Source: Octopus sinensis
Lineage: Eukaryota
Length of the DNA stretch: 64,000 nucleotides
Assembly: GCF_006345805.1 (NCBI RefSeq)
Contig: NC_043005.1
Span: 124,001-188,000, forward strand
Direction: 5' to 3'
Made by a program: the position numbers and the translations under genes. The notes under the pieces are model-generated. The model had not been told where the DNA came from and searched no databases. It saw only the letters and a list, made by a program, of their open reading frames with translations. This document shows, in pieces, positions 620 through 31,237 of this stretch (positions are counted from its first letter, which is position 1; every line of letters starts with the position of its first letter).

Positions 620-620
<1 letters not shown>
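1..620 (+). mobile_element. Penelope-like element (Neptune-type), 3' fragment: GIY-YIG endonuclease C-terminus plus terminal region
   Basis: Bases 1-300 encode KYVGLTE...SFRHWNKRKATQLSNHIWSL...IQWKIL...CGLCDME...LNTRTELFGSC, matching the PLE GIY-YIG pattern (YxG, CxLC, LNxRxEL). An AT-rich UTR and a hammerhead fold follow, ending at a (TA)n tract. Confidence 0.88.
523..596 (+). ncRNA. Minimal type I hammerhead ribozyme, variant core (PLE-associated)
   Basis: Stem I AGATAA 528-533 pairs with TTATCT 585-590. Core CCGAAGA 534-540 (consensus CUGANGA). Stem II GATG...GTGGA-TT-TCCAC...CATC 541-570. GAAAC 572-576. Short stem III CTC-A-GAG, then GTT cleavage triplet 582-584. Confidence 0.75.
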
Positions 621-674
<54 letters not shown>

Positions 675-678
<4 letters not shown>

Positions 679-740
679 AGGTTAATCCAAACGAGAAAAC
701 AGAAAAAGACAACAACACAAAGAGGTGGAACAATTAAGTT
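675..740. repeat. 67-bp module M, copy 1, flanked by (TA)n on both sides
   Basis: CATAAGGTTAATCCAAACGAGAAAACAGAAAAAGACAACAACACAAAGAGGTGGAACAATTAAGTT recurs at 11449 and 24085. Confidence 0.9.
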
Positions 741-875
741 ATATATATATATATATATGTATATACATACATACATACATATATACTTTGATACTTTGAT
801 ACTTTGTTAGGTTTCGGCCATTATTGGCCCAGGCCATGTCTAACTTAATAGCACCACCTGGTGAAGTCTTTCAAG

Positions 876-3860
876 TCAGAATTTGGGCATTATGGCCCAT
901 TCAAGTAGAGAGTTATTGTTTACAGAGACATATCCAGGTGTAGGGGGTTTATCCGGGATTTCTTGAAGGAATCTGTCCAAAGACCTCTTGAACCCTATAA
1001 GGTCAGTTTCTGTTTTAATGTGTTTTGGTGTAATGTTAAAGAGAGCGGCGCCAATTGAGGTGAAATAATTGTGCCGTATTGTTGTTATGAGATGAGAGTG
1101 CGATTTTTGTTTTGGGCGGATGGCACGGGGCCCAAGCCTTGGATGTACCTTAAAGGTGATGCCAACATCATTTGGGCAATGCTGATGGAATATTTTCCAC
1201 ATCATGCAGATGATGTAGCGCTCACGACGACGTTGGAGAGAATAAAGTTTCAGCTTTTCTAGTCGACCCCAATAGTCGAGGCCTGTCATGCCATCTATCT
1301 TTTTTGTGATTGCCCTTTGAGGTGCTTCAACCTTTATGATACCTTGTATTGTGTGGGGAGACCACAGTGGACAACAGTATTCAAGGTGGGATCGGGCAAA
1401 AGTGGAGAAGAGAAGGATAATGGTGTGGATATCTCTCGACTGGAAAGTTGTGAGAATCCAGGAACACATTCTGCGGGCCATGTCGACTTTGGTGTTTATA
1501 TGAGTGGCCCAGCTTATGTTGTTGTCCACAATTACTCCCAAGTCTCTGATGTTGTTGGACGCCGCGAGAGTTTCACCTGAAGGATGGGAGTATGGGAGTT
1601 TCAGGGCATCCTCTTTTCCAAAGTGGATTAACTCAAATTTATCCTCGTTCAGCAGCATATTGTTTTTTTCTGCCCATTGGATAACAGCCAGTAGATCTGA
1701 CTGAAGGCATGTCCGGTCACTCGCCTCATTTATGACCTTCTGTAGCTTGGAATCATCTGCAAAGATTTTTATGTTGCTGTGCTTGATGATGTCATTAATG
1801 TCATTAATGTAAATGATGAAAAGAAGTGGGCCCAGCACAGTGCCTTGCGGAACGCCACTACTGACTTTGGCTGGGCTTGATTTTACCCCTTCAACTACAA
1901 CATGTTGAGATCTGTCTGTCAGGAAACACTTGATCCATTCAGTAACTTTCCAGAGACACCAATGTTGGATAGTGTTTTCAATAGGATCTTGTGATCGACC
2001 CTGTCGAAGGCCTTACTGAAATCAAGGTAGATGACATCGGTGTTGGAGCCCTCTCCCAAAGCTCTCAAAATGTCATCAAAGTGATGCAGGAGCTGCGTTA
2101 GGCAGTCCCTTCCATTACGGAACCCATGTTGGTTGGAGATCAGCCGTCTGTTGCTTTCCAGAAATTGGGTTATTCGAGATCTCACCACCCTCTCAAATAC
2201 CTTGATGATATGAGAGGTGAGTGAGATCGGACGGTAGTTCACTGCAAGGGACTTGTTTCCCTTTTTGAAAACTGGGACAACAGACTGGGACAGAAGGTTT
2301 TTGGAATATAGCCAGCATCCAGTGAGTTTCTCCACAGATTAGCAAGGGGAGATGCAAGTTGGTGTCGACACACCTTCAGGACACACGCAGGGAACCTATC
2401 GGGGCCTACTGCTGAATTGTGTTTTATTTCGTTTATCGCCGCTAGGCATCAGGGACACTAAACGTTATGTCCGATATAGTGTGTTGGGGGTTGACATCAC
2501 TGATACAGCCCAGATCGGCCATATCAGGATTGCTGAAAACAGAGCAGTATTGTTTCTGCAGTATCTCGGCCATGGATTTGGCATTTACTTGGAGAGTGCC
2601 AGTTTCATCAATTAGAGGGCCAACAATGGAGACAGTGACCCTGCGTTTCCTCGCAAATGAAAAAGAACACTTTGGTGTTGAGTTTGATTTTTTCAATGGC
2701 CCACTTCTCCTCAGCTGATCTTTGGTTATTGATGAGGGTCTTCATGCATTGTTGGAGGTTATATTTTTTGGATTCAAGCAGTGCGATAGCCGTCGAATGT
2801 GTGTTGCTGTTGGCAGTACTTTAGTTTGTTAATTTTTTGTTTGTTCTTTTTATTTTTCTGATAATGGTTTTCTGTTTTGGGGGATTCTGCACTTTTTGTT
2901 CACAGGTCTTGGTGGGGAGTGTTTTGCACATATGTCTGTGACGGTGTCTACAAAGATCTGCCAAGATGTTTATGGTTGGTGGAGATGTGTGTATGTGTAA
3001 AGGACCAGTCAACATGTGATAGCTCGTTCCTGATTGCATCCCAGTTGGCATTATGGAGATCCATGTTGTCAAATGTGTGGGCTGGAGGGAGGTCGCTAGG
3101 ATTAGCTTTCGGCTGGTGGAATTTCATGTTACAGAGAACCATGTCATGGTCTGAAAGAAGGGTTTTTTTCCACTGTAGCGTTATGTATAGTGTTAGTGTG
3201 GTTACTAAACACTAGGTCCAAAATGTTCTGATGTCATGTTGGTGCAAGGACAAGTTGGGACAAGAAAAACTCATTCGTAAAGTCGAAAAGTGACTCTGCT
3301 GCTTCTTTGTCAGCGGTTGAGGCGGGAGTGCTTGGTTTCAAGCAGTTTGTAGTCCAGTCAACACAGGGTAGATTGAAGTCTCCCATCATGAGTAGGTTGC
3401 TAGAATGGCACTGTTGAATAAAGCACTTAATGCTGTTCAGGCATTCTTTAAAGCACAGTGGGTTTTGGGGCGGCCTATAGAGCCCAATTACTGTCAGGTC
3501 ATTGGCTTTGTTGTGCACGGTGACTGATTCACACTAGCCGTTGGAGAATATACTATTTCCATCTGCTGTAAACGAGTCATGCAGGAAAATGGCAGTTCCA
3601 CCCTTCCTCCTGCCGATACGATCCGCGCGGATGGTGTGTGTGAATTCTTCACTCTCACTTCGGCTTCCAAGTGGGAGTTGTCAAGGTGGGTCTCAGTGAG
3701 AATGAAGAAAGGGATGTGGTGTGGATGGTTACCAACCCAGTCTTCAATGAATTGGACCTTCCATTTTTGTGCATTGATGGAAGGGCTGACACCTTGTGCA
3801 TTGAGTAGAAATGTGGAAGTTAGTGTAGTGGCTGGTTTTGACTGTTGCAGGGGGCTTGGA
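876..3860 (-). pseudogene. LINE B1 ORF2 (APE endonuclease + reverse transcriptase), split by frameshifts
   Basis: ORF pieces 3494-3904, 3234-3518, 2948-3142, 2442-2696, 1919-2335 and 876-1838 are colinear with the continuous ORF2 at 28181-31237. Confidence 0.9.
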
Positions 3861-3980
3861 TTTTTTGTGTGTGTTAGTGGCAGCAATGTGGGGAATTGGT
3901 GCACTGGGGTAATAGCATAGGATGGTGTTGAGTGATGGCTAGAATATTTTTGTGTATCTCTTTTGCCATGTTCAACATGG

Positions 3981-5101
3981 CTAAAAAAGAATTTTCCTGC
4001 TTAGGGAGAAGTTTTTGACTGGAGGTGTGGTTGCACTGTTGAATGGGGTTGTAGTTTCCACTTTTGTTGTTGTTGTTTTGTGTCTTCCTGAAAAGACTGG
4101 ACCAGCATTACTGCAGCATGGTGTGTTTCTATTTTTTATTTTTATTCAGTTTGTGTGTTGGCTTGAAGCCCCGTTTCTGTTTGTGCGTCGGGTCCCTGGA
4201 AGATGAGTGAAGGGACAGTCACTCAGCAGACATGTTCTCTCACGTTGGGAATACCGGCAGATTTTGGGACTACGAGTCGTGTGTGTTTTGAATTTCGATT
4301 TACTATTTGGTGGTGTTGATGTTATTGTGGGATGCGTGCTTTGGCCTTGGCCGGTAGTGCGTCTAGTGCCGGGTAGATGCGTGAAGATGCAGTCACTATT
4401 TGTGCAGAGTCTCTGGCGCAGTGAATAGCGGCATATTTGGGGTTTCTTGTTTGTGCCGTGGGGGGCGCATTCTGCTTCCTATGTTTCTTTATGTTTTTGT
4501 TACTGCAGTAGTATTGAGGTGGTGATGTGGGGGAAGAGGGCAGTGGTTTCTTATTTGTTTTTGTGTGGTATTTTTGGTGATAGAAGACGATGGTGGAAGC
4601 GGTGGTGATGATGATGATGATAATTGTGGTGGTTGCCGTGAGAGCGGTGAAAAGATACTGGCATTTAGTGAATCATCTAGTATGCTAGAGTTGAAGAGTG
4701 GCTGTTGTTGTTCTTGTTGCTGTGGCTGTTGTTGTTGTTGTTGTGCTTGACCGATGTTAGGGTCAGCCATTGTGCTGGGAACCAGGAGTGGTTCATTCTG
4801 TTGTTGTTGTTGTTGTTGTGGCTGCTGATTTTCTAGCTGTTGCTGTTCTTGAACAGTGAAAATATAAAGAAGCTTTTCAAAATGGCCTTTTGTCAGTTTG
4901 AAAGATACTTCGATGTTTCAGCTTGCTACGAATCTGTTTGACGGATCGTGTGTTGACCACTTGTGATGTTTTTTCGGCAATCTCATTCAAACACAAAACA
5001 TTAAAATTTTCTGTTTGGGAAAGAGAGAACCATGTGTTTATTAAAACATCAATTTCATTATCAGACCAATTTCGTCTGTTGCAGGCCTGCAAGCTAGTCA
5101 T
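3981..5101 (-). pseudogene. LINE B1 ORF1: Myb/SANT-like domain, Q-rich linker, two tandem CCCH zinc fingers
   Basis: Manual translation gives NWSDNEIDVLINTW...EIAEK...TRSVKQIRSKLK, Q runs, ICRYSLRQRLCTNSDCIFTHLPGT and ICRYSQRERTCLLSDCPFTHLPGT. It contains frameshifts and in-frame stops. Confidence 0.78.
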
Positions 5102-5447
5102 GTTTGTTTTTCTTTTGATTTTTGATATATATATATATATTCTTTCTTGGGAGTAAAAGAAGTGTATCAATATATAAATGTTCTCTCTTAAGGGTGTGAG
5201 TTATTGATTATTTGGTTGTTTGAGGATATTAAAAGAAAAACAAGTGTATATAACAATTTGTAGTTAAATAAAAACGTACTTACGGGTTTGTAGGCAAACA
5301 CGTGATTACAAATATATATATATTTAAGGTCAGTTAAGTTTTGAAGCTGTGTAGCTTGCTACTGACTTGGGAGAGAAACAAATAGACGTCCATCCAGTTC
5401 AACAGAGGCACTACATATATATGTATATATATATATATATGATATAT

Positions 5448-6149
5448 AAAAACTTAGATAAAACTTAGATATGTTTCGACCAGAGATTGGTCCAGGCCAT
5501 GTCTAACTTAATAGCACCACCTGATAGGATTATTCGAATCCTGTTTAAGTCAAGTTTTGTTCAAGTAGTGAGTTCTTGTTGGGTGAGTTGTATCCAATTA
5601 TGGGTGGCTTATCTGGTATTCTTTGAAGGAATCTATCCAGACTCTGTTTGAAGTTGATGGGATCCTTTTCCTCTTTGATCTCCCTCGGGACAATGTTAAA
5701 TAGGGCAGGGCCTGTTGAGAAAAAGAAATTATGTTGCAATGTACATGTATGTTGTGATCTTGAGTTTGGCAGGGGACGTATAGCCCGTGGTCCAAGTCTT
5801 GGATGAACCTTGAAGCTAATGTTTAGGTCGTTTGGGCAAAGTTGGCGGTATATTTTCCACATCGTACAATGATGTACCGCTCACGGCGTCGCTGGAGGGA
5901 GTAAAGTTTCAAGGCTTTAAGGCGATCCCAATAATCGAGAGCAGCCATGCCTTCAATTTGGTTAGTGAGAGCCCTCTCGGGTGACTCAATTCTGGAGATG
6001 TTTTGTCTTGTGTGAGGAGACCACAGTGGGCAGCAGTATTCAAGGTGTGGCCGTACAAAGGAGGAAAAAAGTGGTATGATGACACCTTGTTCTCTCGACC
6101 GGAAAGTTCTTAAGATCCAGGAACTCATCCTACGGGATATATCGACCTT
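5448..6149 (-). mobile_element. 5'-truncated CR1-type LINE, family B2, 3' 0.7 kb
   Basis: RT C-terminus (RPHLEYCCPLWSP, LYSLQRRRERY) and (TATCTAAGTTT)n tail. Nearly identical to 28051-28790. (TA)n directly at both junctions. Confidence 0.92.
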
Positions 6150-6155
6150 ATATAC

Positions 6156-6247
<92 letters not shown>

Positions 6248-6284
6248 TGCCGGGGGGGGAGTGTTTGTCCTGTATCTGTCTCTG

Positions 6285-6485
6285 TTTATCTCCACCTCTC
6301 ATCGATTGATAACTGAAGCTGATGTGTTTACATCCCTGTCACGTAGCGGTTCGCCAAAAGAATCTGCTGGAATAAGTACTATGCTTACCAAGAATAAGTC
6401 TTGGCGTCGATTTGTTCGCCTATGTGCGGTGCCTCAGCATGGCCGTAGTCAAGTTACTGAGAAAAGTAAAAGAATAAAAGAATAT
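6285..6485 (+). mobile_element. Cephalopod-type SINE, 3' half, degenerate (present in each U copy)
   Basis: ...TAGCGGTTCGCCAAAAGAATC...GAATAAG...GCGGTGCCTCAGCATGGCCGTAGTC...AAAAGAATAAAAGAAT, homologous to the minus-strand SINE at 56545-56760. Confidence 0.75.
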
Positions 6486-6491
6486 ATTCAC

Positions 6492-6566
<75 letters not shown>

Positions 6567-6584
6567 TGTATTTCTGTCTCTGTT

Positions 6585-6780
6585 TTGTCCCCCACCTTCA
6601 CTTCAGAACCGGTGTTGGTGTTTCTACTTCCCCGTAAATTAGCGGTTCGGCTAAACAGATCGAGAGAATAAGAACAAGGCCTACAGAGAATAAGTTCTGG
6701 CTTCTATTTCTTCGTCTAAAAGCAGTGCTCCTGCATGGCCGCAGTCCGTGATTGTAATAACTGAAACACATAAAAGATTA
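6585..6780 (+). mobile_element. Second SINE 3' half, same family
   Basis: TTTGTCCCCCACC...TTAGCGGTTCGGC...GCAGTGCTCCTGCATGGCCGCAGTC...ACTGAAAC. Confidence 0.75.
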
Positions 6781-8274
6781 CACACACATACACACACACA
6801 CACACACACAATGGCGTCATTGTTACTGAAATCTTTTTATTGATAAACAGGTAAGGAATGTGTGCATACACCCACCCACATGCAATGGCTTCGTTGTTAC
6901 GGAGATCTTTATATTGATAAATCTTAAGATCTCGTTGCATTTGCAAACAGTATAGCTTTCCCTAAGCAGGAAGGCTAAACTCTAGAGCTTGACGTTCTGA
7001 TTGGACCAAGTGGTGTCCTGGTTGTGCATCAAGCATCAGGTTAACTTTTATTCATGCTTTATTATTTTTGTTTGTTTGTTACTTTGGTCTACGTGTTTTT
7101 CAAATCTGGGCTTCGTTTCCGGCCTAGGGTTATACAATTTCTGCATATTTTCTTTATGTAACTTTACTGCTTTTATTTTTTCCTTTTTTCTTTTTTCTTT
7201 TTCGTTTTGCTCTCTTCTGTTTTCTATTTTTTCTTTTTAAGTCTCTTATTCTCTTTGTATTTTGTTTTTTAGTTTTTTTGTTTTTACCTGACACACACTT
7301 AACCGGTTGAATGGAACTTCTCACAGCATCTTCCGTTTCACTTTCCGTACCAACTTTCATTCCTGCATTTTATACTATTTCCAGATTAACGTTCTGCTAG
7401 AAAACAAAGACGAATTCTCAGAAATTCATTGTCTTCAGCTCCCTATCTTCTCAGATTCTCACACATAAACTGCACTGAACTTTATATATTTTTCATTGGC
7501 TTTCGTAATTTTATTCACAGTTCTTATTCACTTGAAACCTCTTATGATTCAACCAATAAATATTTATGAAAACCCCTTTTTCGTAACGGATGGTTGCGGT
7601 CAGCTAAATGTCGTAATCTCTCCGTTTTGTAATCAAATAGAGGAGATTCAATTCAAGGGAGACATGTTTTAGTTTCAAATATTTTTGACTTGCAAATTGT
7701 TGCATGGAATCCCTTCTCGATGACGCGTACCCTAAAACGCATGGATTAAATCAACTCTTCCGTCTTCTTCACTAAGCCTTTCACATAACTAAATCTTTCT
7801 TGGTGGAATTTGAATATTTAAACTGAATATAGGAATAGATATTCATATGAGACGCTTGATAGCTTTCCTCTTTGTAGACAGCGTTGTATAATTAACGAGC
7901 GGAGAATAACTCGGACAATACTCCATTCCGTGTGTCCTCCTCTCGTAATAGAAGCGTCGGGTGGCTGTCATGATACACAGATAGTCTTGGACATTCAAAC
8001 CATGCTGGTTCTCGTGTTTCGCGAGCTCTGACAGAAACAGAATCCTTGCAGTGAGGAAGAAAAGGAGGCAGAGAGATGAGAATCGGCACAAAGAAGGGAA
8101 TTAGTAATTTATCGATAATGAAACAGCGAAAGGCATAAGTGGCCTGAGAGATGAGATTCGGACAAGAATGTAGAGAAAAGGAAAGACTACACAAGAAATT
8201 CTGTTGCATGCCAATCCGATGCCAATGTTTGCTAATAGTAATGGTGCAGTGGAACATAACATATATAGCAGGGT

Positions 8275-8393
8275 CACTAGCATAGCTGGCGTAGGGCGGT
8301 AGTGTGGTCCGCCAGGGCGGCACTTTTAAAGGGGTCTGGATGCGGCAAACGTAGGGGCCACCCCGGGCGGCACACATTCTAGTTCCGTTAGTG
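8275..8393. mobile_element. hAT-type MITE, 119 bp (also ~18854-18973, 26147-26266, 39522-39642)
   Basis: Imperfect 15-bp TIRs CACTAGCATAGCTGG / CTAGTTCCGTTAGTG. 8-bp TSD AGCAGGGT / AGCACGGT (7 of 8 match). Confidence 0.7.
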
Positions 8394-8819
8394 AGCACGG
8401 TGTATACATTTCATTTATATAATAGTAATGGAAGCACTTTAGTGTAGAAAGTAATCCGTGCTCCGTGTGGCAGAACTGATCCTAATAAAGCGGTAATTAC
8501 GAAAGATCTGTATTTCTAGGAACAATGGAGGCAGTTCTGAGAATCTGGCTCCGAAATATCGTTTGCCGTGTGTTGGGAGAAACTGTTGGAAAGTTTCGAC
8601 TCACTCGCTAGGAAATAATTTATGTGAGAGAAGCGCAACTATTTGTATAGACATAAAAATCAATAATAATTTATAAGCTAGGCAAAGAATGCCTACAGAA
8701 ATAAACACACATGGGGAGCGCCCTGTATTGAGCCTCTTTATGTTGAAGCATCTGCAGACGTATGACAAGTGGTGAAACATCATTTCACTATGGCAATATG
8801 AAATGGAAATATTTACCGA

Positions 8820-11013
8820 CCTCCTACACACACAGAAGTAAGACTCATGCTCTCAGGAACGACTCATTGCAAACAAACACAGGTGGAGTCACCTGCTCTA
8901 CCTCACCAATGCACTAGTCATGGAAAAAGTTGTACTCAGACCAACTAGGGAGAATAACATTTTGGATCTCTGCTTCACAATCAATATAGACATCATTCAT
9001 GATGTGAAAGTAACGCCGACATTAGTCTCGGATCACAACATAATAGAGCTTTCTATGTTTGGGCCGAAAGTAGCCAGAGGCATACAGCCAAAAGGAAGCA
9101 CCCTAAATCTCTCCAATCGGAACTTCCACAAAGTAGACTGGAAACCGATCCAAAAAGAGATCCGCAGACAGGACTGTCCGAAATATCTCTCCACACCAGA
9201 CATTGGCATGAAACTAGAATATTTCATGTCTGTTATGCAAGCCATATGCCAGAAATATGTTCCAGAGCACAAGGCCACAACAAATTGGAACAAGATTCCA
9301 AAGGAGAGGAAGATTCTCATGATATGACGGACGAAGGTTGCAAATCGCCTCAACCAAAAAGTAGTGAAAGGTCCCGCCTAAAAACAACACTGATGTAGAT
9401 TGGATAAAGATTGCAACAATTTTGAGAGGGAGAGAGTAGACAAAGAAGCCTGGGTTAGTAAAAACATTAGTAAAAACAGAGCTTTCTTGCAAATGGCAGA
9501 CTGCCAAGCAAGCTGAAGGAGGGAATAATATGCCCAATCAATAAAGGAAGCAGAGCAGATGCCAAAACCATAGGCATATCTCTCTGACTTCACACATCAG
9601 CAAAGTCAAGGAACAGATCGTCAGAGGGAAACCAATTGCATACCTTGAAGAAAATAATTTGTTGAGTGATACCCAGCATGACTTTCGAACAGGTAGGAGC
9701 TGCCTGACCCAGCTCTTACAACATTATGACTTGGTGTTGAGGCAGTTACTCAACAACTCAAATGTGGACGTAACATACCTTGATTTCGCAAAAGCTGTTG
9801 ATTAGGGTATGATATGCCACAAACTGCGATTTCTCGGCGTAGCAGGAAAACTTGTTGTGTGGTTACATGACTTTCTGAAAGATAGAAGTCAGGAAGTAGT
9901 GGCCAATGGTGCCACCTCAACGAAAACACAAATAGTGAGCGGTGTTCCACAGGGCACTGTCTTGGCACCGCTGCTTTTCATAGTGGCCCTCTTAGATATG
10001 CCCTCAACTGCCCGGATAGCTACCCTTGCAAGGTACGCAGACGATACGAATGTCTCGTAGAAAATACAGAAGCCCAGCAATGTTGCACACCTGCAGCAGG
10101 AGATGACCTCAATTTACAGATGGGCTGAGGATAATAATATGCAGTTAAATGCTGAAAAATTCCAAGCCCTGCGCCACCAGCATCCAAAACTGAATATGAA
10201 ACTTACAGGGTACACTGGTCCACAGGGAATTTTAATCCCAGAGCCTAAGTCAATGAAGGACCTGGGTATCGACATGCGTGATGATACCGCTTTTCAAGTG
10301 CACATTACCAGGATGGTGACAAAGTGCAGACAACTGACTCGATGGATCCTGAGAATATTCAGAACGAGCGAGTAGGAAACCACGATGGTCCTCTGGAGGA
10401 CATTCTTCTCCAGCTGCATGGATTCCTGCTTCCAGCTATGGTCACCCAACAGTGTAAAATTAACAGCGGACCTTGAAGCAATCCAGCGAAGCTTCACAAA
10501 GAAGATCGTCTCATTGCAACAGCTCAGCTAATTGGAAAGGCTACAACAGCTAAGACTCTACTCCCTGAAGCTAAGGCGGGAGAGGTATTCAGTAATATAT
10601 ACATCTGGAAGATCCTGGAAGGAATTGTGCCAAATTTTGGCATTGGAAGCTACATCAATGCAAGGAACGGGTCGACACCGCACACTGCCAAATATCCCAG
10701 CAATGCCATCGAGCTTCAGGACCAGTTACTGCAACAACCTGTGTTTCGGGGGCCCACATCTTGTTTAATATTCTCCCAAAGAACCTGAGGAATCTGCACA
10801 AAGTAAATGTAGGCGTTTTTCAATCAAAGCTGGACGTCTTCCTGTCGAGAGTCCCAGATGAACGTACCTCAAGGCAAGAGGTGCAAATGAGGGTAGCTAT
10901 ATCAAACTCCATTCTAAACCAAGTGGCATATATTAGAGGAGGATCTCAGTAATCAGTGTAGCAAAACAGCGGTGCTCCAACATGGCCACAGCAATGAGCT
11001 GAAATTATAAAAA
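8820..11013 (+). pseudogene. Decayed CR1-type LINE family D (relative of family C), copy 1, with internal deletions
   Basis: Fragments PTRENNILDLCFT, GVPQGTVL, YADD, LYSLKLRRERY and TSRQEVQMR, with many stops. 3' end CATGGCCACAGCAATGAGCTGAAAT. About 0.4 kb deleted near 9480 relative to copies 2 and 4. Confidence 0.9.
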
Positions 11014-11022
11014 TGTATGTAC

Positions 11023-11065
<43 letters not shown>

Positions 11066-11069
11066 AAAA

Positions 11070-11404: not shown

Positions 11405-11408
<4 letters not shown>
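11070..11408 (+). mobile_element. tRNA-derived SINE with CORE/Meta-like central domain, copy 1
   Basis: A box TGGCTCAGTGG, B box GCTCGAATCC, central GTGTTCTTGAGCAAGGCACTTTA...CACTCAGCTGTAGAAATGAGT, 3' hairpin, then (TA)n. Confidence 0.8.
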
Positions 11409-11448
<40 letters not shown>

Positions 11449-11452
<4 letters not shown>

Positions 11453-20300: not shown

Positions 20301-22352
20301 GACATCAGCGAAGAAGATTTACTAACCATAGATGAAGTGGACGCAAATTCAACTGATTGTCCTGATGGTTTACCAGCAATCCTCCTCAAATCGTGTAAGC
20401 ATGCCCTGGCAAAACCCCTCCAGATTTTCTTCCAGAGCTTTCTTGCAAATGGCAGACTGCCAAGCAAGCTGAAGGAGGGAATAATATGCCCAGTCAACAA
20501 AGGAAGCAGAGCAGATGCCAAAAACTATTGGCATATCTCTCTGACTTCACACATCAGCAAAGTCATGGAACAGATCGTCAGAGGGAAACCAATTGCATAC
20601 CTTGAAGAAAATGATTTATTGAGTGATACCCAGCATGACTTTCGAACAGGTAGGAGCTGCCTGACCCAGCTCTTACAACATTATGAATTGGTGTCGAGGC
20701 AGTTACTCAACAACTCAAATGTGGACATAACATACCTTGATGTCGCAAAAGCTGTTGATTAGGGTATAATATGCAACAAACTGCGAATTCTCGGCATAGC
20801 TGGAAAACTTGTAGAGTGGTTACATGACTTTCTGAAAGATAGAAGTCAGGAAGTAGTGGCCAATAGCGCCTCCTCAACGAAAACACAAATAGTGAGCGGT
20901 GTTCCACAGGGCACTGTCTTGGCACTGCTGCTTTTCATAGTGGCCCTCTTAGATATGCCCTCAACTGCCCGGATAGCTACCCTTGCAAGGTACGCAGACG
21001 ATACGAATGTCTCGTAGAAAATACAGAAGCCCAGCAATGTTGCACACCTGCAGCAGGAGATGACCTCAATTTACAGATGGGCTGAGGATAATAATATGCA
21101 GTTAAATGCTGAAAAATTCCAAGCCCTGCGCTACCAGCATCCAAAACTGAATATGAAACTTACAGGGTACACTGGTCCACAGGGAATTTCAATCCCAGAG
21201 CCTAAGTCAATGAAGGACCTGGGTATCGACACGTGTGATGATACCGGTTTTCAAGGCACATTACCAGGATGGTGACAAAGTGCAGGCGACTGACTCGATG
21301 GATCCTGAGAATATTCAGAACGAGGGAGAAGGAAACCATGATGGTCCTCTGGAGGACATTCTTCTCCAGCCGCATGGATTCCTGCTTCCAGCTATGGTCA
21401 CCCAACAGTGTAAAATTAACAGCGGACCTTGAAGCAATCCAGCGAAGCTTCACAAAGAATATGGTCTCATTGCAACAGCTCAGCTAATTGGAAAGGCTGC
21501 AACAGCTAAGACTCTACTCCCTGAAGCTAAGGCGGGAGAGGTATTCAGTAATATATACATCTGGAAGATCCTGGAAGGAATTGTGCCAAATTTTGGCATT
21601 GGAAGCTACATCAATGCAAAGAACGGGTCGACACTGTACAGTGCCAAATATCCCAGCAATGCCATCGAGCTTCAGGACCAGTTACTGCAACAACCTGTGT
21701 TTCGGGGGCCCACATCTTGTTTAATATTCTCCCAAAGTACCTGAGGAATCTGCACAAAGTAAATGTAGGCGTTTTTCAATCAAAGCTGGACGTCTTCCTG
21801 TCGAGAGTCCCAGATGAACGTACCTCAAGGCAAGAGGTGCAAATGAGGGTAGCTATATCAAACTCCATTCTAAACCAAGTGGCATATATTAGAGGAGGAT
21901 CTCAGTAATCAGTGTAGCAAAACAGCGGTGCTCCAACATGGCCACAGCAATGAGCTGAAATTATAAAAATGTATGTACATATTTTATATATATATATATA
22001 TATATGTATGTATAAAAGCGCATGGCTCAGTGGTTAGAGCGTCGAGCTTACGATCGTGAGGTTGGGAGCTCGAATCCCGGACCGGGCTGCGTGTTGTGTT
22101 CTTGAGCAAGGCACTTTATTTCACGTTGCTCCAGTTCACTCAGCTGTAGAAATGAGTTGCGACGTCACTGGTGCCAATCTGTATCGACCTTTGTCTTTCC
22201 TTTGGATAACACTGGTGGCTTGGAGAGGGGAGGCTGGTATGCATGGGCGACTGCTGGTCTTCCATAAACAACCTTGCCCGGACTTGTATCTAGGAGGGTA
22301 ACATTCTAGGTGCAATCCCATGGTCATTCATGACCGAAGGGGGTCTTTACCC

Positions 22353-22357
<5 letters not shown>
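16847..22357 (+). repeat. Composite tandem unit U, copy 2 (includes LINE D ~19400-21970)
   Basis: Colinear with copy 1 and shares inactivating stops in LINE D. Confidence 0.95.
22018..22357 (+). mobile_element. tRNA-derived SINE with CORE/Meta-like domain, copy 2
   Basis: Near-identical to 11070-11408; B box GCTCGAATCC. Confidence 0.8.
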
Positions 22358-22402
<45 letters not shown>

Positions 22403-22479
22403 AATACTTATATATATATATATATGTATATACATATATATATTTATATATATATATGTATATACATATATATATATAT

Positions 22480-23980
22480 GTCTGTTGTCCCAGTTTTCAA
22501 AAAGGGAAACAAGTCCCTTGCAGTGAACTACCGTCCGATCTCACTCACCTCTCATATCATCAAGGTATTTGAGAGGGTGGTGAGATCTCGAATAACCCAA
22601 TTACTGGAAAGCAACAGACGGCTGATCTCCAACCAACATGGGTTCCGTAATGGAAGGGACTGCCTAACGCAGCTCCTGCATCACTTTGATGACATTTTGA
22701 GAGCTTTGGGAGAGGGCTCCAACACCGATGTCATCTACCTTGATTTCAGTAAGGCCTTCGACAGGGTCGATCACAAGATCCTATTGAAAAAACTATCCAA
22801 CATTGGTGTCTCTGGAAAGTTACTGAAATGGATCAAGTGTTTCCTGACAGACAGATCTCAACATGTTGTAGTTGAAGGGGTAAAATCAAGCCCAGCCAAA
22901 GTCAGTAGTGGCGTTCCGCAAGGCACTGTGCTGGGCCCACTTCTTTTCATCATTTACATTAATGACATTAATGACATCATCAAGCACAGCAACATAAAAA
23001 TCTTTGCAGATGATTCCAAGCTACAGAAGGTCATAAATGAGGCGAATGACCGGACATGCCTTCAGTCAGATCTACTGGCTGTTATCCAATGGGCAGAAAA
23101 AAACAATATGCTGCTGAACGAGGATAAATTTGAGTTAATCCACTTTGGAAAAGAGGATGCCCTGAAACTCCCATACTCCCTTCCTTCAGGTGAAACTCTC
23201 GCGGCATCCAACAACATCAGAGACTTGGGAGTAATTGTGGACAACAACATAAGCTGGGCCACTCATATAAGCACCAAAGTTGACATGGCCCGCAGAATGT
23301 GTTCCTGGATTCTCACAATTTTCCAGTCGAGAGATATCCACACCATTATCCTTCTCTTCTCCACTTTTGCCCGACCCCACCTTGAATACTGTTGTCCACT
23401 GTGGTCTCCCCACACAATACAAGGTATCATAAAGGTTGAAGCACCTCAAAGGGCAATCACAAAAAAGATAGATGGCATGACAGGCCTCAACTATTGGGGT
23501 CGACTAGAAAAGCTGAAACTTTATTCTCTCCAACGTCGTCGTGAGCGCTACATCATCTGCATGATGTGGAAAATATTCCATCAGCATTGCCAAAATGATG
23601 TTGGCATCACCTTTAAGGTACATCCAAGGCTTGGGCCCCGTGCCATCCGCCCAAAACAAAAATCGCACTCTCATCTCATAACAACAATACGGCACAATTA
23701 TTTCACCTCAATTGGCGCCGCTCTCTTTAACATTACACCAAAACACATTAAAACAGAAACTGACCCTATAGGGTTCAAGAAGTCTTTGGACAGATTCCTT
23801 CAAGAAATCCCGGATAAACCCCCTACACCCGGATATGTCTCTGTAAACAATAACTCTCTACATGAGTGGGCCATAGTGCCCAAATTCTGACTTGAAAGAC
23901 TTCACCAGGTGGTGCTATTAAGTTGGACATGGCCTGGGCCAATAATGGCCGAAACCTATCAAAGTATCAAAGTATCAAAG

Positions 23981-23983
<3 letters not shown>
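22480..23983 (+). mobile_element. 5'-truncated CR1-type LINE, family B (copy B3), RT frame open
   Basis: ORF 22424-23890 is RT fused in frame to the TA tract. Nearly identical to the reverse complement of 783-2290. (TATCAAAG)3 tail. (TA)n at both junctions. Confidence 0.95.
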
Positions 23984-24067
<84 letters not shown>

Positions 24068-24084
24068 ATGTATGTATGTATATA

Positions 24085-24149
24085 CATAAGGTTAATCCAA
24101 ACGAGAAAACAGAAAAAGACAACAACACAAAGAGGTGGAACAATTAAAG

Positions 24150-24151
<2 letters not shown>
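24085..24151. repeat. Module M, copy 3
   Basis: Same 67-bp sequence; here the TA spacer to unit U is uninterrupted. Confidence 0.9.
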
Positions 24152-24192
<41 letters not shown>

Positions 24193-24212
24193 CATACATA
24201 CATATATATATG

Positions 24213-24259
<47 letters not shown>

Positions 24260-24261
24260 GA

Positions 24262-24491
24262 CCGGGGGGAGTGTCTGTCTATCTGTCTCTGTTTATCTCC
24301 ACCTCTCATCGATTGATAACTGAAGCTGATGTGTTTACATCCCTGTCACGTAGCGGTTCGCCAAAAGAATCTGCTGGAATAAGTACTATGCCTACCAAGA
24401 ATAAGTCTTGGCGTCTATTTGTTCGCCTATGTGCGGTGCCTCAGCATGGCCGTAGTCAAGTTACTGAGAAAGTAAAAGAATAAAAGAATAT

Positions 24492-24583
<92 letters not shown>

Positions 24584-27500
24584 GTATATATTTGTATTTC
24601 TGTCTGTGTGTTTGTACCCCACTTTCACTTCAGAACTGAAATCTTTATATTCATAAATCTAAAGATCTCGTTGCATTTGCAAACAGTATAGCTTTCACTA
24701 ATCAGGAATCTTTATATTGATAAACAGGTAAGGAATGTGTGCATACACCCACCCACATACAATGGCTTCGTTGTTACGGAGATCTTTATATTGATAAATC
24801 TAATGATCTCGTTTCATTTGCAAACAGTATAGCTTTCCTAAGCAGGAAGGCTAAACTCTGGAGCTTGACGTTCTGATTGGACCAAGTGGTGTCCTGGTTG
24901 TGCATCAGGCATCAGGTTTAAATTTTATTCATGCTTTATTATTTTTGTTTGTTTGTTACTTTGGTCTACGTGTTTTTCAAATCTGGGCTTCGTTTCCGGC
25001 CTAGGGTTATACAATTTCAGCATATTTTCTTTATGAAACTGTACTGCTTTTATTCGTTCCTTTTTTGTTTTTTCTCTTTCGTTTTGCTCTCTTCTGTTTT
25101 CTATTTTTTATTTTTAAGTCTCTTATTCTCTTTGTTTTTGTTTTGGTTTTGTTTTTAACCTCACACACACTTAACCGGTTGAATGGAACTTCTCACAGCA
25201 TCTTCCGTTTCACTTTCCGTACCAACTTTCATTCCTGCAATTTATACTATTTCCAGATTAACGTTCTGCTAAAAAACAAAGACGAATTCTCAGAAATTCA
25301 TTGTCTTCAGCTCCCTATCTTCTCAGATTCTCACACATAAACTGCACTGAACTTTATATATTTTTCATTGGCTTTCGTAATTTTATTCACAGTTCTTATT
25401 CACATGAAACCTCTTATGATTCTACCAATAAATATTTATGAAAACCCCTTTTTCGTAACGGATGGTTTCGGTCAGCTAAATGTCGTAATCTCTCCGTTTT
25501 GTAATCAAATAGACGAGATACAATTCAAGGGAGACATGTTTTAGTTTCAAATATTCTTCACTTGCAAATTGTTGCATGGAATCCCTTCTCGATGACGCGT
25601 ACCCTAAAACGCATGAATTAAATCAACTCTTCCGTCTTCTTCACTAAGCCTTTCACATAACTAAATCTTTCTTGGTGGAATTTGAATATTTAAACTGAAT
25701 ATAGGACTAGATATTCATATGAGACGCTTGATAGCTTTCCTCTTTGTAGACAGCGTTGTATAATTAACGAGCGGAGAATAACTCGGGCAATACTCCATTC
25801 CGTGTGTCCTCCTCTCGTAATAGAAGCGTCGGGTGGCTGTCATGATACACGGATAGTCTTGGACATTCAAACCATGCTGGTTCTCGTGTTTCACGAGCTC
25901 TGACAGAAACAGAATCCTTGCAGTGAGGAAGAAAAGGAGGCAGAGAGATGAGAATCGGCACAAAGAAGGGAATTAGTAATTTATCGATAATGAAACAGCG
26001 AAAGGCATAAGTGGCCTGAGAGATGAGATTCGGACAAGAATGTAGAGAAAAGGAAAGACTACACAAGAAATTCTGTTGCATGCCAATCCGATGCCAATGT
26101 TTGCTAATAGTAATGGTGCAGTGGAACATAACATATATAGCAGGGTCACTAGCATAGCTGGCGTAGGGCGGTAGGTTTGGTCCGCCAGGGCGGCACTTTT
26201 AAAGGGGTCTGGATGCGGCAAACGTAGAGGCCACCCCGGGCGGCACACATTCTAGCTCCGTTAGTGAGCACGGTGTATACATTTCTTTTATACAATAGTA
26301 ATGGAAGCACTTGAGTGGAGAAAGTAATCCGTGCTCCGTGTGGCAGAACTGATCCAAATAAAGCGGTAATTACGAAAGGTCTGTATTTCTAGGAACAATG
26401 GAGGCAGTTCTGAGAAACTGGCTCCGAAATATCGTTTGCCGTGTGTTGGGAGAAACTGTTGGAAAGTTTCGACTCACTCGCATAGGAAAGAATTTATGTG
26501 AGAGAAGCGCAACTATTTGTATAGACATAAGAATCAATAATAATTTATAAGCTAGGCAAAGAATGCTTTCAGAAATAAACACAAATGGGGAGCGCCCTGT
26601 ATTGAGCCTCTTTATGTCGAAGCATCTGCAGACGTATGACAAGTGGTGAAACATCATTTCACTATGGCAATATGAAATGGAAATATTTATCGACTTCCTA
26701 CACACACTGTAATAAGACTCATGCTCTCAGGAACGACTCATTGCAAACAAACACAGGAGGAGTCACCTGCTCTACCTCACCAATGCCCTAGTCATGGAAC
26801 AAGTTGTACTCCGACCAACTAGGGAAAATAACATTTTGGATCTCTGCTTCACAAACAATATAGACATCATTCATGATGTGAAAGTTACGCCGACATTAGT
26901 CTCGGATCACAACATAATAGAGCTTTCTATGTTTGGGCCGAAAGTAGCTAGAGGCATACAGCCAAAAGGAAGCACCCGAAATCTCTCCAATCGGAACTTC
27001 CACAAAGTAGACTGGAAACCGATCCAAAAAGAGATCCGCAGACAACTGTCCGAAATGTCTCTCCACACCAGACATTGGCATGAAACTAGAATATTTCATG
27101 TCTGTTATGCAAGCCATATGCCAGAAATATGTTCCAGAGCACAAGGCCACAACAAATAGGAACAAGATTCCAAAGGTGAGGAAGATTCTCATGAGACGAC
27201 GGACGAAGGTTGCAAATCGCCTCAACCAACATGCCAAAAGTAGTGAAAGGTCCCGCCTAAAAACAACACTGATGTAGATTGGAAAAAGCTTGAAACAATT
27301 TTATGGGAGGGAGAGAGTAGACAACGAAGCCTGGGTTAGTAAAAACATTAAGTGAAATCCAAAGGCCTTCTTTCATTACGCCACAGAAATAGAATCAATA
27401 CACCGCAAGATAGGATCCCTCTTCCAAAAGGATGGCACCCTCGCATATAGTCCAACCAGGAACAGTGAGGTACTGAATGAGCAATTCAAAAATGTCTTTA

Positions 27501-28027
27501 TCACTCCGTTGGAACACAGACAAGTGAATCAACCGGTGGACTTTTTTTGCCGCATCACCTATAACCAGCGAGGCAATTACGATGGAATACATCGACATTA
27601 GCGAAGAAGATTTACTAACCATAGATGAAGTGGACGCAAACTCAACGGATGGTCCTGATGGTTTACCAGCAATCCTCCTCAAATCGTGTAAGCATACCCT
27701 GGCAAAACCCTTCCAGATTTTCTTCCAGAGCTTTCTTGCAAATGGCAGACTGCCAAGCAAGCTGAAGGGGGTAATAATGTGTCCAGTCAATAAAGGAAGC
27801 AGAGCAGATGCCAAAAACTATAGGCATATCTCTCTGACTTCACACATCAGCAATGTCAAGGAACAGATCGTCAGAGGGAAACCAATTGCATACCTTGAAG
27901 AAAATGATTTATTGAGTGATACCCAGCATGACTTTCGAACAGGTAGGAGCTGCCTGACCCAGCTCTTACAACATTATGACTTGTTGTTGAGGCAGTTACT
28001 CAACTAACTCAAATGTGGACGTAACAT
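24262..28027 (+). repeat. Composite tandem unit U, copy 3 (3'-truncated inside LINE D)
   Basis: Colinear with copies 1 and 2 up to ...GGACGTAACAT, followed by a short TA tract and a family B2 tail. Confidence 0.93.
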
Positions 28028-28050
28028 TTATATATACAAATATATATATA

Positions 28051-31000
28051 AACTTAGACTTAGATAAACTTAGATATGTTTCGACCAAAGATTGGTCCAG
28101 GCCATGTCTAACTTAATAGCACCACCTGATAGGATTATTCGAATCCCGTTTAAGTCAAGTTTTGTTCAAGTAGTGAGTTCTTATTGGGTGAGTTGTATCC
28201 AGTTTTGTTCAAGTAGTGAGTTCTTGTTGGGTGAGTTGTATCCAATTATGGGTGGCTTATCTGGTATTTTTTGAATGAATCTATCCAGACTCTGTTTAAA
28301 GTTGATGGGATACTTTTCCTCTTGGATCTCTCTCGGGACAATGTTAAATAGGGCAGGGCCTGTTGAGAAAAAGAAATTATGTTGCAGTGTACATGTATGT
28401 TGTGATCTTGAATTGGGCAGGGGACGTATAGCCCGTGGTCCAAGTCTTGGATGAACCTTGAAGCTAATGTTTAGGTCGTTTGGGCAAAGTTGGCGGTATA
28501 TTTTCCACATCGTACAAATGATGTAACGCTCACGGCGACGCTGGAGGGAGTAAAGTTTCAAGGCTTTAAGGCGATCCCAATAATCGAAAGCAGCCATGCG
28601 TTTAGTGAGTGCCCTCTGGGGTGACTCAATTCTGGAGATGTTTTGTCTTGTGTGAGGAGACCACAGTGGGCAGCAGTATTCAAGGTGTGGCCGTACAAAG
28701 GAGGAAAAATGTGGTATGATGACACCTTGTTCTCTGGACCGGAAAGTTCTTAAGATCCAGGAACTCATCCTACGAGCTATATCGACCTTCTTGTTGATGT
28801 GTGCACTCCAACTGAGATCGTCATCAACAATTACACCCAGGTCTCTGATATTGTTAGAGGCTGTGAGCGGTTCCCCTGAAGGAAGAGAGTATGGCTGTTT
28901 TAGTGAGGAGTTTCTTCCAAAATGCATCAGCTCAAATTTTCCCTCGTTCAGTTGCATTTTTTTTCTGTCTGCCCATTGACTCACAGCATATAGATCAGAC
29001 TGGAGTTGAGTTCGGTCTGCTTCTTCATTGACGATTTGCTGGAGCTTGGTGTCATCAGCAAATATTTTCACTTTGCCGTAATGTACGACACTGGAAAGGT
29101 CGTTTATGTAGATTATGAAGAGTAGCGGACCCAAGACAGTCCCCTGGGGGACACTGCTGGTGACTTTTGCTGGGCTTGAGTGGACTCCATCAACTACAAC
29201 ATGTTGTGTTCTATTCGCCAGGAAATACTTGATCCAGTGTAGAACTTTTCCACGGATTCCAACATTTGCCAATTTTGAGAGTAGGATATTATTGTCTACC
29301 CTGTCGAACGCTTTACTGAAGTCAAGATATATGACATCAGAGTTCGAACCTGTTCCCAAGGCTTTGAGTACATCTTCAATGTGGTGTAAGATCTGTGTTA
29401 GACAGTCCCTGCCACAGCGAAAGCCATGCTGATTTGCATTTAGGAGTTTCTGGGTCTCCAGGAAGTCAGCCAACCTTGATCTTAACACTCTTTCAAACAC
29501 TTTGATGATGTGGGAGGTGAGTGAGATTGGGCGATAGTTGAGTGCGAGGGATATGTTTCCCTGTTTGAAAACCGGGATGACTGACTGGGATAGAAACTGT
29601 TTTGGTATATAACCTGCATCTAACGAATTTCTCCAGAGGTTGGTCAGAGGGACTGCAAGTTGGTGTCTACATTCCTTCAGGAGACTAGCGGGGAATCTAT
29701 CAGGGCCTACAGCAGAGTAGTATTTGACCTCATTTATTGCTGCTACGATGTCAGTAGGAGTGAAGGTTATGTCTGAGATTTTATGTTGGGAGTCAACTTC
29801 GTTCGCTTCTCTTACGTCAATATCAGTGGGAACACTAAAGACAGAGCAGTATTGTTTCTGCAGTATTTCTGCCATTTCTTTAGCATCGTGTTGGGGAATG
29901 CCGTTAGCATCAATTAATGGCCCAATGGGTGAGACAGTGGTTCTATGCTTATTTGCATAGGAATAGAACACTTTTGGGTTCTGTTTGATGTTTTTGATTA
30001 CCCACTGTTCCTCCGCAGCTCTTTGGTTTTCAATGGAGGTTTTCATGTCGTTCTGCAGATGAAGTTTTTCCAGCTCTAGCCTTTTCATTGTTGTTGAACG
30101 TGGATGTTGTTTGTGGGAATATTTTAATTGGTTGATTTTTTTGTTAAGTCTTTTGATGCGCCTGATGAGTGTTTTCTTATTTTTAGGGAGCCGATTTCTG
30201 TTTGTGTTAGTAGATTTCGTGGGAGCGTGTTTAGAGCATGTATATGTGACAATGTTTTCAAAGTGCTGCCATGCGGTCTCAATATGGGTGGAATTGAGGG
30301 TAAAAGACCAGTCGATGAAAGACAGATCCTTTCTGATTGCTCCCCAGTCTGCTTTGTGGAAGTTTATGTTATCAAATGAGTGCCATGGAGTGGGATTGGC
30401 TGGTTTGGTTTTTATATGTCGGGAATTGAAATTGCAGGGTACCATGTCGTGATCTGAGAGGAGAGTTTTTTCAACTGAAATACTGTGAACAAAGCTAGAG
30501 TGATTGGTCAATACCAGATCCAAGATCGTTTTATTCTGTCTCGTTGGTTCGAGCACAAGCTGAGTCAGGAAGTATTCATCCATTAGATTAAAGAGCAGTT
30601 CCGCTGCTGCTCTATCTGATGTAGAGCACTTGCCTAACTTTAGAGTATTTGTGGGCCAGTTCACATGAGGGAGGTTAAAATCACCCATCACTAGTATGTT
30701 TCCGGAGTGGTACTTCCGAAGGAAGGACTTGACTTTGCTAAGGCAATCTTCAAAGCACTTTAAAGGTGCTTGGGGAGGCCTGTAAAGACCAACAATGACT
30801 ATGTCCTTGGCCTTGCTGAATAGTGATACCGATTCACAATAGCCATTGGAAAATATGTCCTTGGCATCAAGTGAGAAGGAGTCATGGATAAAGATGGCTG
30901 TCCCTCCTTTATTTCGGTTTGTACGATCCGCACGAACAATGGTGAAATCTTTTATTTTCACCTCGGCGTCTATATGGGTGTTGTTCAGGTGAGTCTCGGT

Positions 31001-31237
31001 AAGGATAAAGAAAGGGAAGCAATGTGTCGTTTCGGCAAGCCAACTCTCTATATATGGGATCTTCCATTTTTGGGCAATAATTGATGGGTTGATGCCACGT
31101 ACATTTAATAGGAATGTCGAGGTAAGTGAAGTTTGATGTTTGCATTGTTCTAAGTTGTTCAGTGGTAACAATGTGGGTAGTTCTTGTATGGAGCTGTGTG
31201 TGTATGATTTTCTTGTTGGTAGTGGGTGTGTGGTCAC
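28051..31237 (-). mobile_element. CR1-type LINE family B2, ORF2 complete, ORF1 missing
   Basis: Tail (TATCTAAGTT)n at a TA tract; 1018-aa open frame; 5' end stops just upstream of the APE domain. Confidence 0.95.
28181..31237 (-). CDS. LINE ORF2: APE endonuclease + reverse transcriptase
   Basis: [66 protein letters not shown]. Confidence 0.93.
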   Translation of the reverse strand: MTTHPLPTRKSYTHSSIQELPTLLPLNNLEQCKHQTSLTSTFLLNVRGINPSIIAQKWKIPYIESWLAETTHCFPFFILTETHLNNTHIDAEVKIKDFTIVRADRTNRNKGGTAIFIHDSFSLDAKDIFSNGYCESVSLFSKAKDIVIVGLYRPPQAPLKCFEDCLSKVKSFLRKYHSGNILVMGDFNLPHVNWPTNTLKLGKCSTSDRAAAELLFNLMDEYFLTQLVLEPTRQNKTILDLVLTNHSSFVHSISVEKTLLSDHDMVPCNFNSRHIKTKPANPTPWHSFDNINFHKADWGAIRKDLSFIDWSFTLNSTHIETAWQHFENIVTYTCSKHAPTKSTNTNRNRLPKNKKTLIRRIKRLNKKINQLKYSHKQHPRSTTMKRLELEKLHLQNDMKTSIENQRAAEEQWVIKNIKQNPKVFYSYANKHRTTVSPIGPLIDANGIPQHDAKEMAEILQKQYCSVFSVPTDIDVREANEVDSQHKISDITFTPTDIVAAINEVKYYSAVGPDRFPASLLKECRHQLAVPLTNLWRNSLDAGYIPKQFLSQSVIPVFKQGNISLALNYRPISLTSHIIKVFERVLRSRLADFLETQKLLNANQHGFRCGRDCLTQILHHIEDVLKALGTGSNSDVIYLDFSKAFDRVDNNILLSKLANVGIRGKVLHWIKYFLANRTQHVVVDGVHSSPAKVTSSVPQGTVLGPLLFIIYINDLSSVVHYGKVKIFADDTKLQQIVNEEADRTQLQSDLYAVSQWADRKKMQLNEGKFELMHFGRNSSLKQPYSLPSGEPLTASNNIRDLGVIVDDDLSWSAHINKKVDIARRMSSWILRTFRSREQGVIIPHFSSFVRPHLEYCCPLWSPHTRQNISRIESPQRALTKRMAAFDYWDRLKALKLYSLQRRRERYIICTMWKIYRQLCPNDLNISFKVHPRLGPRAIRPLPNSRSQHTCTLQHNFFFSTGPALFNIVPREIQEEKYPINFKQSLDRFIQKIPDKPPIIGYNSPNKNSLLEQNWIQLTQ

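Follow-up and report, generated by a model that had tools for sequence, protein, structure and literature searches.

Long interspersed nuclear elements (LINEs) of the CR1/L2 group are, to our knowledge, regarded as non-site-specific. The LINEs described as targeting microsatellites are Waldo in (ACAY)n, Mino in (AC)n, Kibi in (TC)n, Koshi in (TTC)n and Dong in (TAA)n (PMC3812793), and site-specific elements among the clades with an apurinic/apyrimidinic-type endonuclease (APE) are said to occur only in R1 and Tx1 (PMC6007223). Insertion into (TA)n microsatellites has been described for Micron, a miniature inverted-repeat transposable element (MITE) of rice (PMC3812793; cited in PMC7878876). 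For pairs of LINEs and short interspersed nuclear elements (SINEs) of the RTE clade, the microsatellite-like 3′ tail correlates with the integration site, and RTE-type 3′ ends of this kind are proposed to influence integration sites, such that a new tail repeat could redirect an element to host microsatellites (PMC6007223). Pairing between template RNA and target has been reported for R1Bm and I factor (PMC6007223), and in amniote CR1 the 3′ end is formed by a hairpin and, after it, a short 8-10-nt direct repeat (PMC8665684). No LINE directed to (TA)n turned up in the searchable literature, nor did a CR1/L2 element directed to microsatellites or a microsatellite-directed APE-type LINE outside the R1 and Tx1/L1-related lineages. 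Here, we analysed a window of the Octopus sinensis genome (the whole stretch of 64,000 nucleotides at positions 124,001 to 188,000 of contig NC_043005.1) in which CR1/L2-type LINE copies interrupt the (TA)n tracts of a tandem array. The results support a real local bias of integration toward pre-existing (TA)n, not a restriction to it.

LINE insertions into pre-existing (TA)n tracts

The 64-kb window is rich in simple repeats, and nearly all of it is transposon-derived eukaryotic DNA. Of the whole window, 2.5% is (TA)n, and outside the LINEs its share is 2.9-4.8%. A reading made from the letters alone (the sequence-only reading) had noted five LINE copies, which were recovered where it had placed them, with B1 starting at 786 and B3 at 22481. 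Together with two further copies, the LINEs considered here are as follows.

786-5412, minus strand: LINE B1, near full length, with broken open reading frames (ORFs)
5448-6149, minus strand: B2 fragment, 5′-truncated, 89% identical to the full B2 copy
11586-16771, plus strand: LINE C, full length, ORF1 and ORF2 intact
12848-13738 and 13582-16686: ORF1 (296 aa) and ORF2 (1034 aa, APE and reverse transcriptase) of C
22481-23983, plus strand: LINE B3, 5′-truncated, with an open 488-aa frame, 98.3% identical to B1
28051-31237, minus strand: full B2 copy, 5′-truncated, with an open 1018-aa ORF2 (28181-31237; APE and reverse transcriptase)
33298-33376, minus strand: short B2 3′-end fragment with both hairpins and the repeat tail, in AT-rich DNA
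43374-44087, minus strand: C-like copy, 5′-truncated, with an A-rich tail, 90% (nt) and 89% (aa) identical to C

B2 is a sister family of B1 (~68% nt identity), and the ORF2 proteins of B2 and C are 36% identical. Both have the N-terminal APE-type endonuclease and the reverse transcriptase of the CR1/L2 group, with Pfam matches to Exo_endo_phos_2 (E = 4e-16 for B2 and 4.5e-11 for C) and RVT_1 (E = 1e-27 and 5e-30), and a C-terminal motif, RPHLEYC...LYSLQRRRERY, is one that we take to be CR1/L2-like. The 3′ ends are also those of this group: one or more hairpins precede a short direct repeat of about 8 nt, and poly(A) is absent. Judged from these sequence features, the elements are assigned to the CR1/L2 group of LINEs without long terminal repeats (non-LTR LINEs), so that the earlier label "CR1-type" stands at the level of the group.

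Self-comparison of the window revealed a unit of ~5.4 kb in four copies with 93-97% mutual identity. The unit is a nest of transposons and is made up, in order, of (TA)n, two SINE-like elements (U) ending in (CA)n, ~2 kb of other sequence, an old LINE (LINE-A), (TA)n, a SINE with a tRNA-like head, (TA)n, a 66-bp element (M) and (TA)n. ARAGORN called no tRNA on the SINE heads, and "tRNA-like" refers to box A/B-like motifs recognised by eye alone. The units, and the spacers that are needed as references, are listed below.

617-785: (TA)n, M (66-bp spacer element, 672-738) and (TA)n, the left part of the first M-U spacer
740-785: 3′ flank of B1, with the motif GTATATACATACATACATAC common to uninterrupted spacers
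~6172-11583: array unit 1
8893-11066, plus strand: LINE-A, an old 5′-truncated relative of C, present in each array unit
11069-11408, plus strand: SINE with tRNA-like head and (TA)n at both sides, a lineage distinct from the LINEs
11409-11448: uninterrupted SINE-(TA)20-M spacer of unit 1, 40 bp of perfect TA, the empty form of the B3 target
16772 to ~22400: array unit 2, with the shared spacer M past the B3 insertion (~24086-24150)
24151-24259: uninterrupted M-(TA)n-U spacer of unit 3, 109 bp, the empty form of the C and B1/B2-fragment targets
24260-28027: array unit 3, truncated
37455-42730: array unit 4

Filled and empty forms of the same spacers are thus available within the array. As shown by the self-comparison, and as the sequence-only reading had seen, the M-(TA)n-U spacer is whole in unit 3 and is split by LINEs elsewhere: by C between units 1 and 2 (69 + 74 bp of TA), and by B1 together with the B2 fragment at the array start (46 + 33 + 98 bp). 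The SINE-(TA)n-M spacer of unit 2 is split by B3, with TA flanks of 123 bp (left) and 100 bp (right). The tracts at the junctions are as follows.

5413-5447: 33-bp TA-rich tract, both the 5′ flank of B1 and the 3′ tail of the B2 fragment
6150-6247: (TA)n at the 5′ junction of the B2 fragment, followed by SINE U of unit 1
11515-11585: (TA)n at the 5′ junction of C, on the M side
16772-16845: (TA)n at the 3′ junction of C, followed by SINE U of unit 2
22357-22480: imperfect (TA)n at the 5′ junction of B3
23984-24083: (TA)n at the 3′ junction of B3, with 76 bp perfect, followed by M

The junction sequences bear out that TA-rich DNA lies past the 3′ tail in all five of the originally noted copies and that (TA)n lies at the 5′ junction in four of them, and the strings at 6149/6150 and 22480/22481 read as they had been quoted. 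The 5′ TA of B1 and the 3′ TA of the B2 fragment, which had been treated as separate observations, are the same 33-bp tract and are not independent. The B1 3′ flank runs directly into GTATATACATACATACATAC, a motif that stands equally far from M in the uninterrupted spacers, and the TA in this flank is therefore target and not element tail. The total length of TA is 143, 177 and 223 bp at the filled sites compared to 109 and 40 bp at the uninterrupted ones, which fits a gain of TA at insertion. The spacer copies without an insertion thus identify pre-existing (TA)n tracts as the targets of B1, B3, C and the B2 fragment.

Tail slippage was considered as the source of all of the TA and was rejected, since the empty spacers hold tracts and the B1 flank keeps the target motif; the earlier argument that slippage alone is insufficient for the TA at the 5′ junctions was right. 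An origin of B1 and B3 as an inverted segmental duplication was also rejected, since M keeps its direct orientation next to each of them, with B1 on one side of it and B3 on the other.

Four of the seven younger insertion events lie in (TA)n against a background of 2.9-4.8%, which is a 12-20 fold enrichment (P for at least 4 of 7 = 2e-5 to 2e-4; post hoc values without correction, for a window chosen for the pattern). Insertion into (TA)n is thus strongly enriched over background within the scope of one 64-kb window. As a cause of the four positive events, chance was rejected on these P values, with the reservation that the window had been selected after the fact.

Copies and relatives outside (TA)n

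The full B2 copy joins unit 3 at a position without a TA tract. Homology of unit 3 to units 1, 2 and 4 extends to ...GTGGACGTAACAT / ...AAATGTGGACGTAACAT (28027; GTAACAT|), past which unit 3 reads TTATATATACAAATATATATATA and then the B2 3′ repeats. At the same point, units 1, 2 and 4 read ACCTTGAT / ACCTTGATTT, with no TA tract.

27940-28028, plus strand: end of the unit 3 body, with homology stopping at 28027
28029-28050: 22-bp TA-rich tail TATATACAAATATATATATA on the B2 3′ end, absent at the matching position of the other units

Either TATATACAAATATATATATA arrived with B2 or it is a remnant after a deletion. Unit 3 is not resumed past the 5′ end of B2, which indicates that a deletion was involved, at integration or later. 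TA is absent from the 5′ end itself (31237), which directly adjoins an element bounded by terminal inverted repeats. At face value, the full B2 copy is a counter-example to TA targeting and is not countable as TA-targeted. The sequence-only reading had held that no unit body carries a young insertion; this copy lies in the unit 3 body, at a position that is non-TA in units 1, 2 and 4, and the statement was wrong.

The claim that these LINEs are inserted only into (TA)n also fails with the two further copies. The B2 fragment at 33298-33376, which was found by motif search and has 1 mismatch in ~55 nt to the full B2 3′ end, has no (TA)n at either end, and neither does the C-like copy at 43374-44087. 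In total, the 5′ junction is without TA in three of the seven younger events and also in the older LINE-A, which is 55-63% identical (aa) to C, starts near ORF2 residue 221, and has 29 bp of (TA)n past its 3′ tail. Within the window, one of the two copies of the C family is in TA, and the sole clean target seen for B2 is non-TA, subject to the deletion alternative for that junction. Site specificity would place essentially all copies in the target, and here 4/7 are in (TA)n.

Relatives of both lineages were found in other genomes. Four families related to B (38-44% aa identity), from marine metagenomes and Logan assemblies, have the tails (CCAAAGGTA)2, (AACGAAGT)2, (ACATAGGT)2 and (ACAGAGTAAGGAA)2 and diverse, non-TA flanks. 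Four families related to C (57-86% aa identity) keep the GGTGCCCCAGCATGGCC...CTGAAAC motif and vary in their tails, which are (TACAAGA)2(CA)5 in Argonauta hians and (AATTA)5, AAATGAAT-type or A-rich in the others. All eight related families retain a 3′ end built of a hairpin and short repeats, and none showed (TA)n at its 3′ flanks, with one family in each set (those with the (ACAGAGTAAGGAA)2 and A-rich tails) stopping at a contig edge where the flank is unreadable, and the TA association is therefore not conserved in either lineage. The closest protein-database matches were 45% identical for B2 and 86% identical for C (the latter from a Logan assembly), and the 57% match to C ORF2 is a hypothetical protein of the octopod Argonauta hians. 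Since the contig with the 86% match has ~90% DNA identity to both C and the C-like copy, it represents either another species or a third subfamily. Metagenome contigs and the genome contigs of bacteria and archaea gave no match when scanned for the exact B/B2 and C/SINE 3′ motifs, and a protein-seeded scan of viral contigs for relatives was likewise negative.

Several other features of the elements and of the array were observed. The 5′ untranslated region of C (11957-12493) holds 64-78-bp tandem repeats, each with a (TA)n run of up to 53 bp, and LINE C therefore has TA tracts inside the element; its ORF1 has weak CCCH-type zinc-finger matches alone (E about 0.004). The full B2 copy has an exact tandem duplication of 43 bp (28158-28244) that runs from the 3′ end of ORF2 into the 3′ untranslated region, and it is not found in the B2 fragment at 5448-6149. 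About 375 bp of the LINE-A body in units 2-4 is missing from unit 1 (9469-9477 versus 20057-20433), which is an indel that arose after the duplication. A second short SINE-like head (GCAGGTATGGCTGCGTGGTAAGAAGC...) lies at 37303-37454 and 42926-43077, between (ATGT)n and (TA)n; one of these heads precedes unit 4 and the other follows it, each with a U element directly downstream. The flanks at 37163-37596 and 42788-43225 (~440 bp) are direct repeats with 90% identity.

The element that abuts the full B2 copy (31239-36800) is 5.56 kb long, with terminal inverted repeats of ~220 bp and a further inverted pair at 33773-34286 / 36004-36533. Its 355-aa ORF (34233-35300) has no Pfam match; inspection by eye suggests a GIY-YIG-like motif (TVYQIKC...YISETSRSINDRFKKH), which recalls Penelope-like elements. 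The left arm of the element is apparently interrupted by ~2.3 kb of AT-rich DNA holding the short B2 fragment. Elsewhere in the window, an ORF at 53425-54219 is RNase H-like (RVT_3, E = 9e-7) and is probably the remnant of an LTR retroelement, and a 142-aa ORF at 57889-58317 has a weak match to the helix-turn-helix domain of P-element transposase (E = 0.02). At 59081-59931 lies an unusually long trinucleotide repeat, 850 bp of near-perfect (CAG)n, with a putative 337-aa poly-Q frame.

3′ ends, a proposed priming preference and rival explanations

B and B2 have two adjacent hairpins in common at the 3′ end, the second of which differs by a compensatory change from G-C to A-U; conserved hairpins with one compensatory pair indicate recognition of this end by the reverse transcriptase. 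The hairpins are followed by GAAAC and, after this, by short direct repeats, namely TAACAAAG(TATCAAAG)2 in B1, (TATCAAAG)3 in B3 and (TATCTAAGTT)2-3 in B2. The 3′ end of C consists of GGTGCCCCAGCATGGCC, a hairpin, CTGAAAC and an (AATCAA)-type tail. GGTGCxCCAGCATGGCC, a small hairpin and CTGAAAC are common to C, LINE-A, the C-like copy and the U SINEs, after which variable short repeats follow. The repeat units of the tails (6-11 nt, in two or three copies) begin with or contain TAT, and every tail passes directly into TAT... after the last unit. In both readable B2 copies, TA-rich sequence follows the repeats (22 bp in the full copy and 33 bp in the fragment), and all of the inserted copies have complete canonical 3′ ends.

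The U SINEs (6273-6491 and 6569-6787 with copies in units 2-4; 43131-43200; 56544-56784 on the minus strand) form a SINE/LINE partner pair with LINE C and LINE-A by the shared 3′ motif GGTGCxCCAGCATGGCC...CTGAAAC. As expected users of the C-type machinery, they end in (CA)n or in no repeat. The U copy at 56544-56784 has (TA)n(TG)n at its 5′ edge (56765-56784), a repeat that may be internal to the SINE. These elements of ~220 bp are presumably like an abundant octopus SINE; a literature search with their motif string gave nothing.

We favour selection at the priming step, at about even odds (a probability of roughly 0.5), in which a template RNA's UA-rich 3′ end would pair with nicked (TA)n and thereby give the preference. 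The template RNA would end in a UA-rich partial repeat unit and, in B2, in a further 20-35 nt of (UA)n, which could come from readthrough from the source locus or from addition by slippage. Such an end would pair well with a nicked (TA)n strand during target-primed reverse transcription, and the APE endonuclease may also readily nick TpA-rich DNA. If the first nick falls inside a tract of 40-120 bp, the cut of the second strand would fall inside it too and TA would be left at both junctions, since the distance by which the nicks are staggered is shorter than the tract, and slippage on the TA register would lengthen the tract at the 3′ junction. In favour of priming-step selection, the full B2 copy joins its non-TA site with a 22-bp TA-rich tail, and the B2 fragment has a similar tail of 33 bp.

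Several points weigh against priming-step selection. There are only 7-8 events, all in one window picked for the pattern, and the four positive events are confined to a single array and, within it, to two types of spacer. Target-site duplications are not readable within TA, and the junctions are not placeable to the nucleotide. The reverse transcriptases of the LINEs R2 and L1 are documented to jump between templates, and the order on the element strand is B2 fragment, TA and the 5′ end of B1; the B2 fragment could thus be a product of the B1 insertion, with the reverse transcriptase passing from the 5′ end of the B1 RNA to the 3′ end of the B2 RNA. Counting the two as one event gives three of six (P about 5e-4 to 2e-3, by hand arithmetic from the same background fractions). 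The junction between unit 3 and B2 could be a later deletion and not the integration site. Moreover, an unrelated SINE lies in the same TA system, which suggests that the tract rather than the element may matter.

The main rival takes up this last point and makes the tract the cause: long (TA)n would be a structured or fragile, or an insertion-tolerant, sink for any retroposon, and the rest of the pattern would be element-borne TA tails in a window chosen post hoc. At least three unrelated lineages (B/B2, C and the tRNA-like SINE) and the 66-bp M lie between (TA)n tracts of the array, (TA)n is found at the 5′ edge of the U SINE both in the array and at 56765-56784, and all of the positive events are in one array. 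The SINE inside the same system suggests that (TA)n, or templates ending in UA, have some general property at work here, and not a family-specific endonuclease. However, 11 other (TA)n tracts in the window (34-129 bp) are unoccupied, and the complete canonical 3′ ends of the inserted copies fit endonuclease-dependent target-primed reverse transcription and not break repair. The surroundings are all transposon debris, so that tolerance does not single out TA, and we regard the tract as sole cause as possible, though doubtful. An assembly artefact, in which (TA)n would mark false joins of repeat contigs and the LINE/TA junctions would be unreal, would suit the location of all positive junctions in low-complexity DNA of a tandemly duplicated, hard-to-assemble region. 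Yet both flanks continue the array unit in register, with M on one side and U or the SINE on the other, and false joins would hardly repeat in this way; we consider an artefact extremely improbable.

A different explanation places the specificity in the protein: in B, B2 and C, either the endonuclease or the ORF2 protein would recognise (TA)n as elements of the R1 and Tx1 clades recognise their targets. This would account for the four copies with both junctions in pre-existing (TA)n and for the 12-20 fold enrichment, but not for the full B2 copy at a non-TA site, the short B2 fragment and C-like copy without TA at either end, LINE-A without TA at its 5′ end, or the eight related families without TA flanks. 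In addition, with 36% identity between the ORF2 proteins of B2 and C, a shared specificity would need an independent origin or long conservation, and the relatives are without it. Strict targeting is therefore very unlikely, and dedicated (TA)n targeting by the three families through an endonuclease-encoded site specificity is not supported. From the proposal of the sequence-only reading that these families target (TA)n, the enriched insertion of B1, B3, C and the B2 fragment is retained, and dedicated targeting is given up in view of the exceptions and the relatives. It is also unlikely, if less sharply so, that true homing to (TA)n is a property of the CR1/L2 LINEs of family B (B1/B3), and perhaps of C, with the target found via pairing of a UA-rich RNA 3′ end rather than by the endonuclease and with the non-TA copies as an off-target minority.

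Relation to known systems

So far, the evidence comes from a single suggestive locus. Should the bias prove genome-wide, the short list of microsatellite-associated LINEs would gain a CR1/L2-type example, and the bias would support a role of the 3′ repeat tail, more than of the endonuclease, in steering elements to host simple repeats, by which safe-harbour insertion would be reached cheaply. The bias could further help to explain the interleaving of transposons and microsatellites in cephalopods and the repetitive flanks of their microsatellites.

Like CR1/L2 LINEs (Jockey superfamily), the window elements have APE and reverse transcriptase in ORF2, no poly(A), and a 3′ end with a hairpin and short repeats. 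Unlike them, four copies lie in (TA)n with tails that run on into TA, and ORF1 of C, with its weak CCCH matches, differs from the types catalogued for CR1/L2, which are esterase, PHD and RRM-CCHC (PMC4120745). With Waldo, Mino, Kibi, Koshi and Dong, the window elements share the property of being non-LTR elements with one microsatellite on both sides. Those five belong to the R1, Tx1/L1-related and R4 clades, none is on (TA)n, and essentially all of their copies are in the target, whereas the window elements are CR1/L2-type and about half of their copies are in the target. Micron differs from the window LINEs in being a MITE among the DNA transposons, without reverse transcriptase or target-primed reverse transcription. 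The RTE LINE/SINE pairs belong to another clade and show 1-2-nt microhomology at dispersed sites rather than insertion into long tracts, but they have in common with the window LINEs the proposed principle that a repeat at the RNA 3′ end influences the site of priming.

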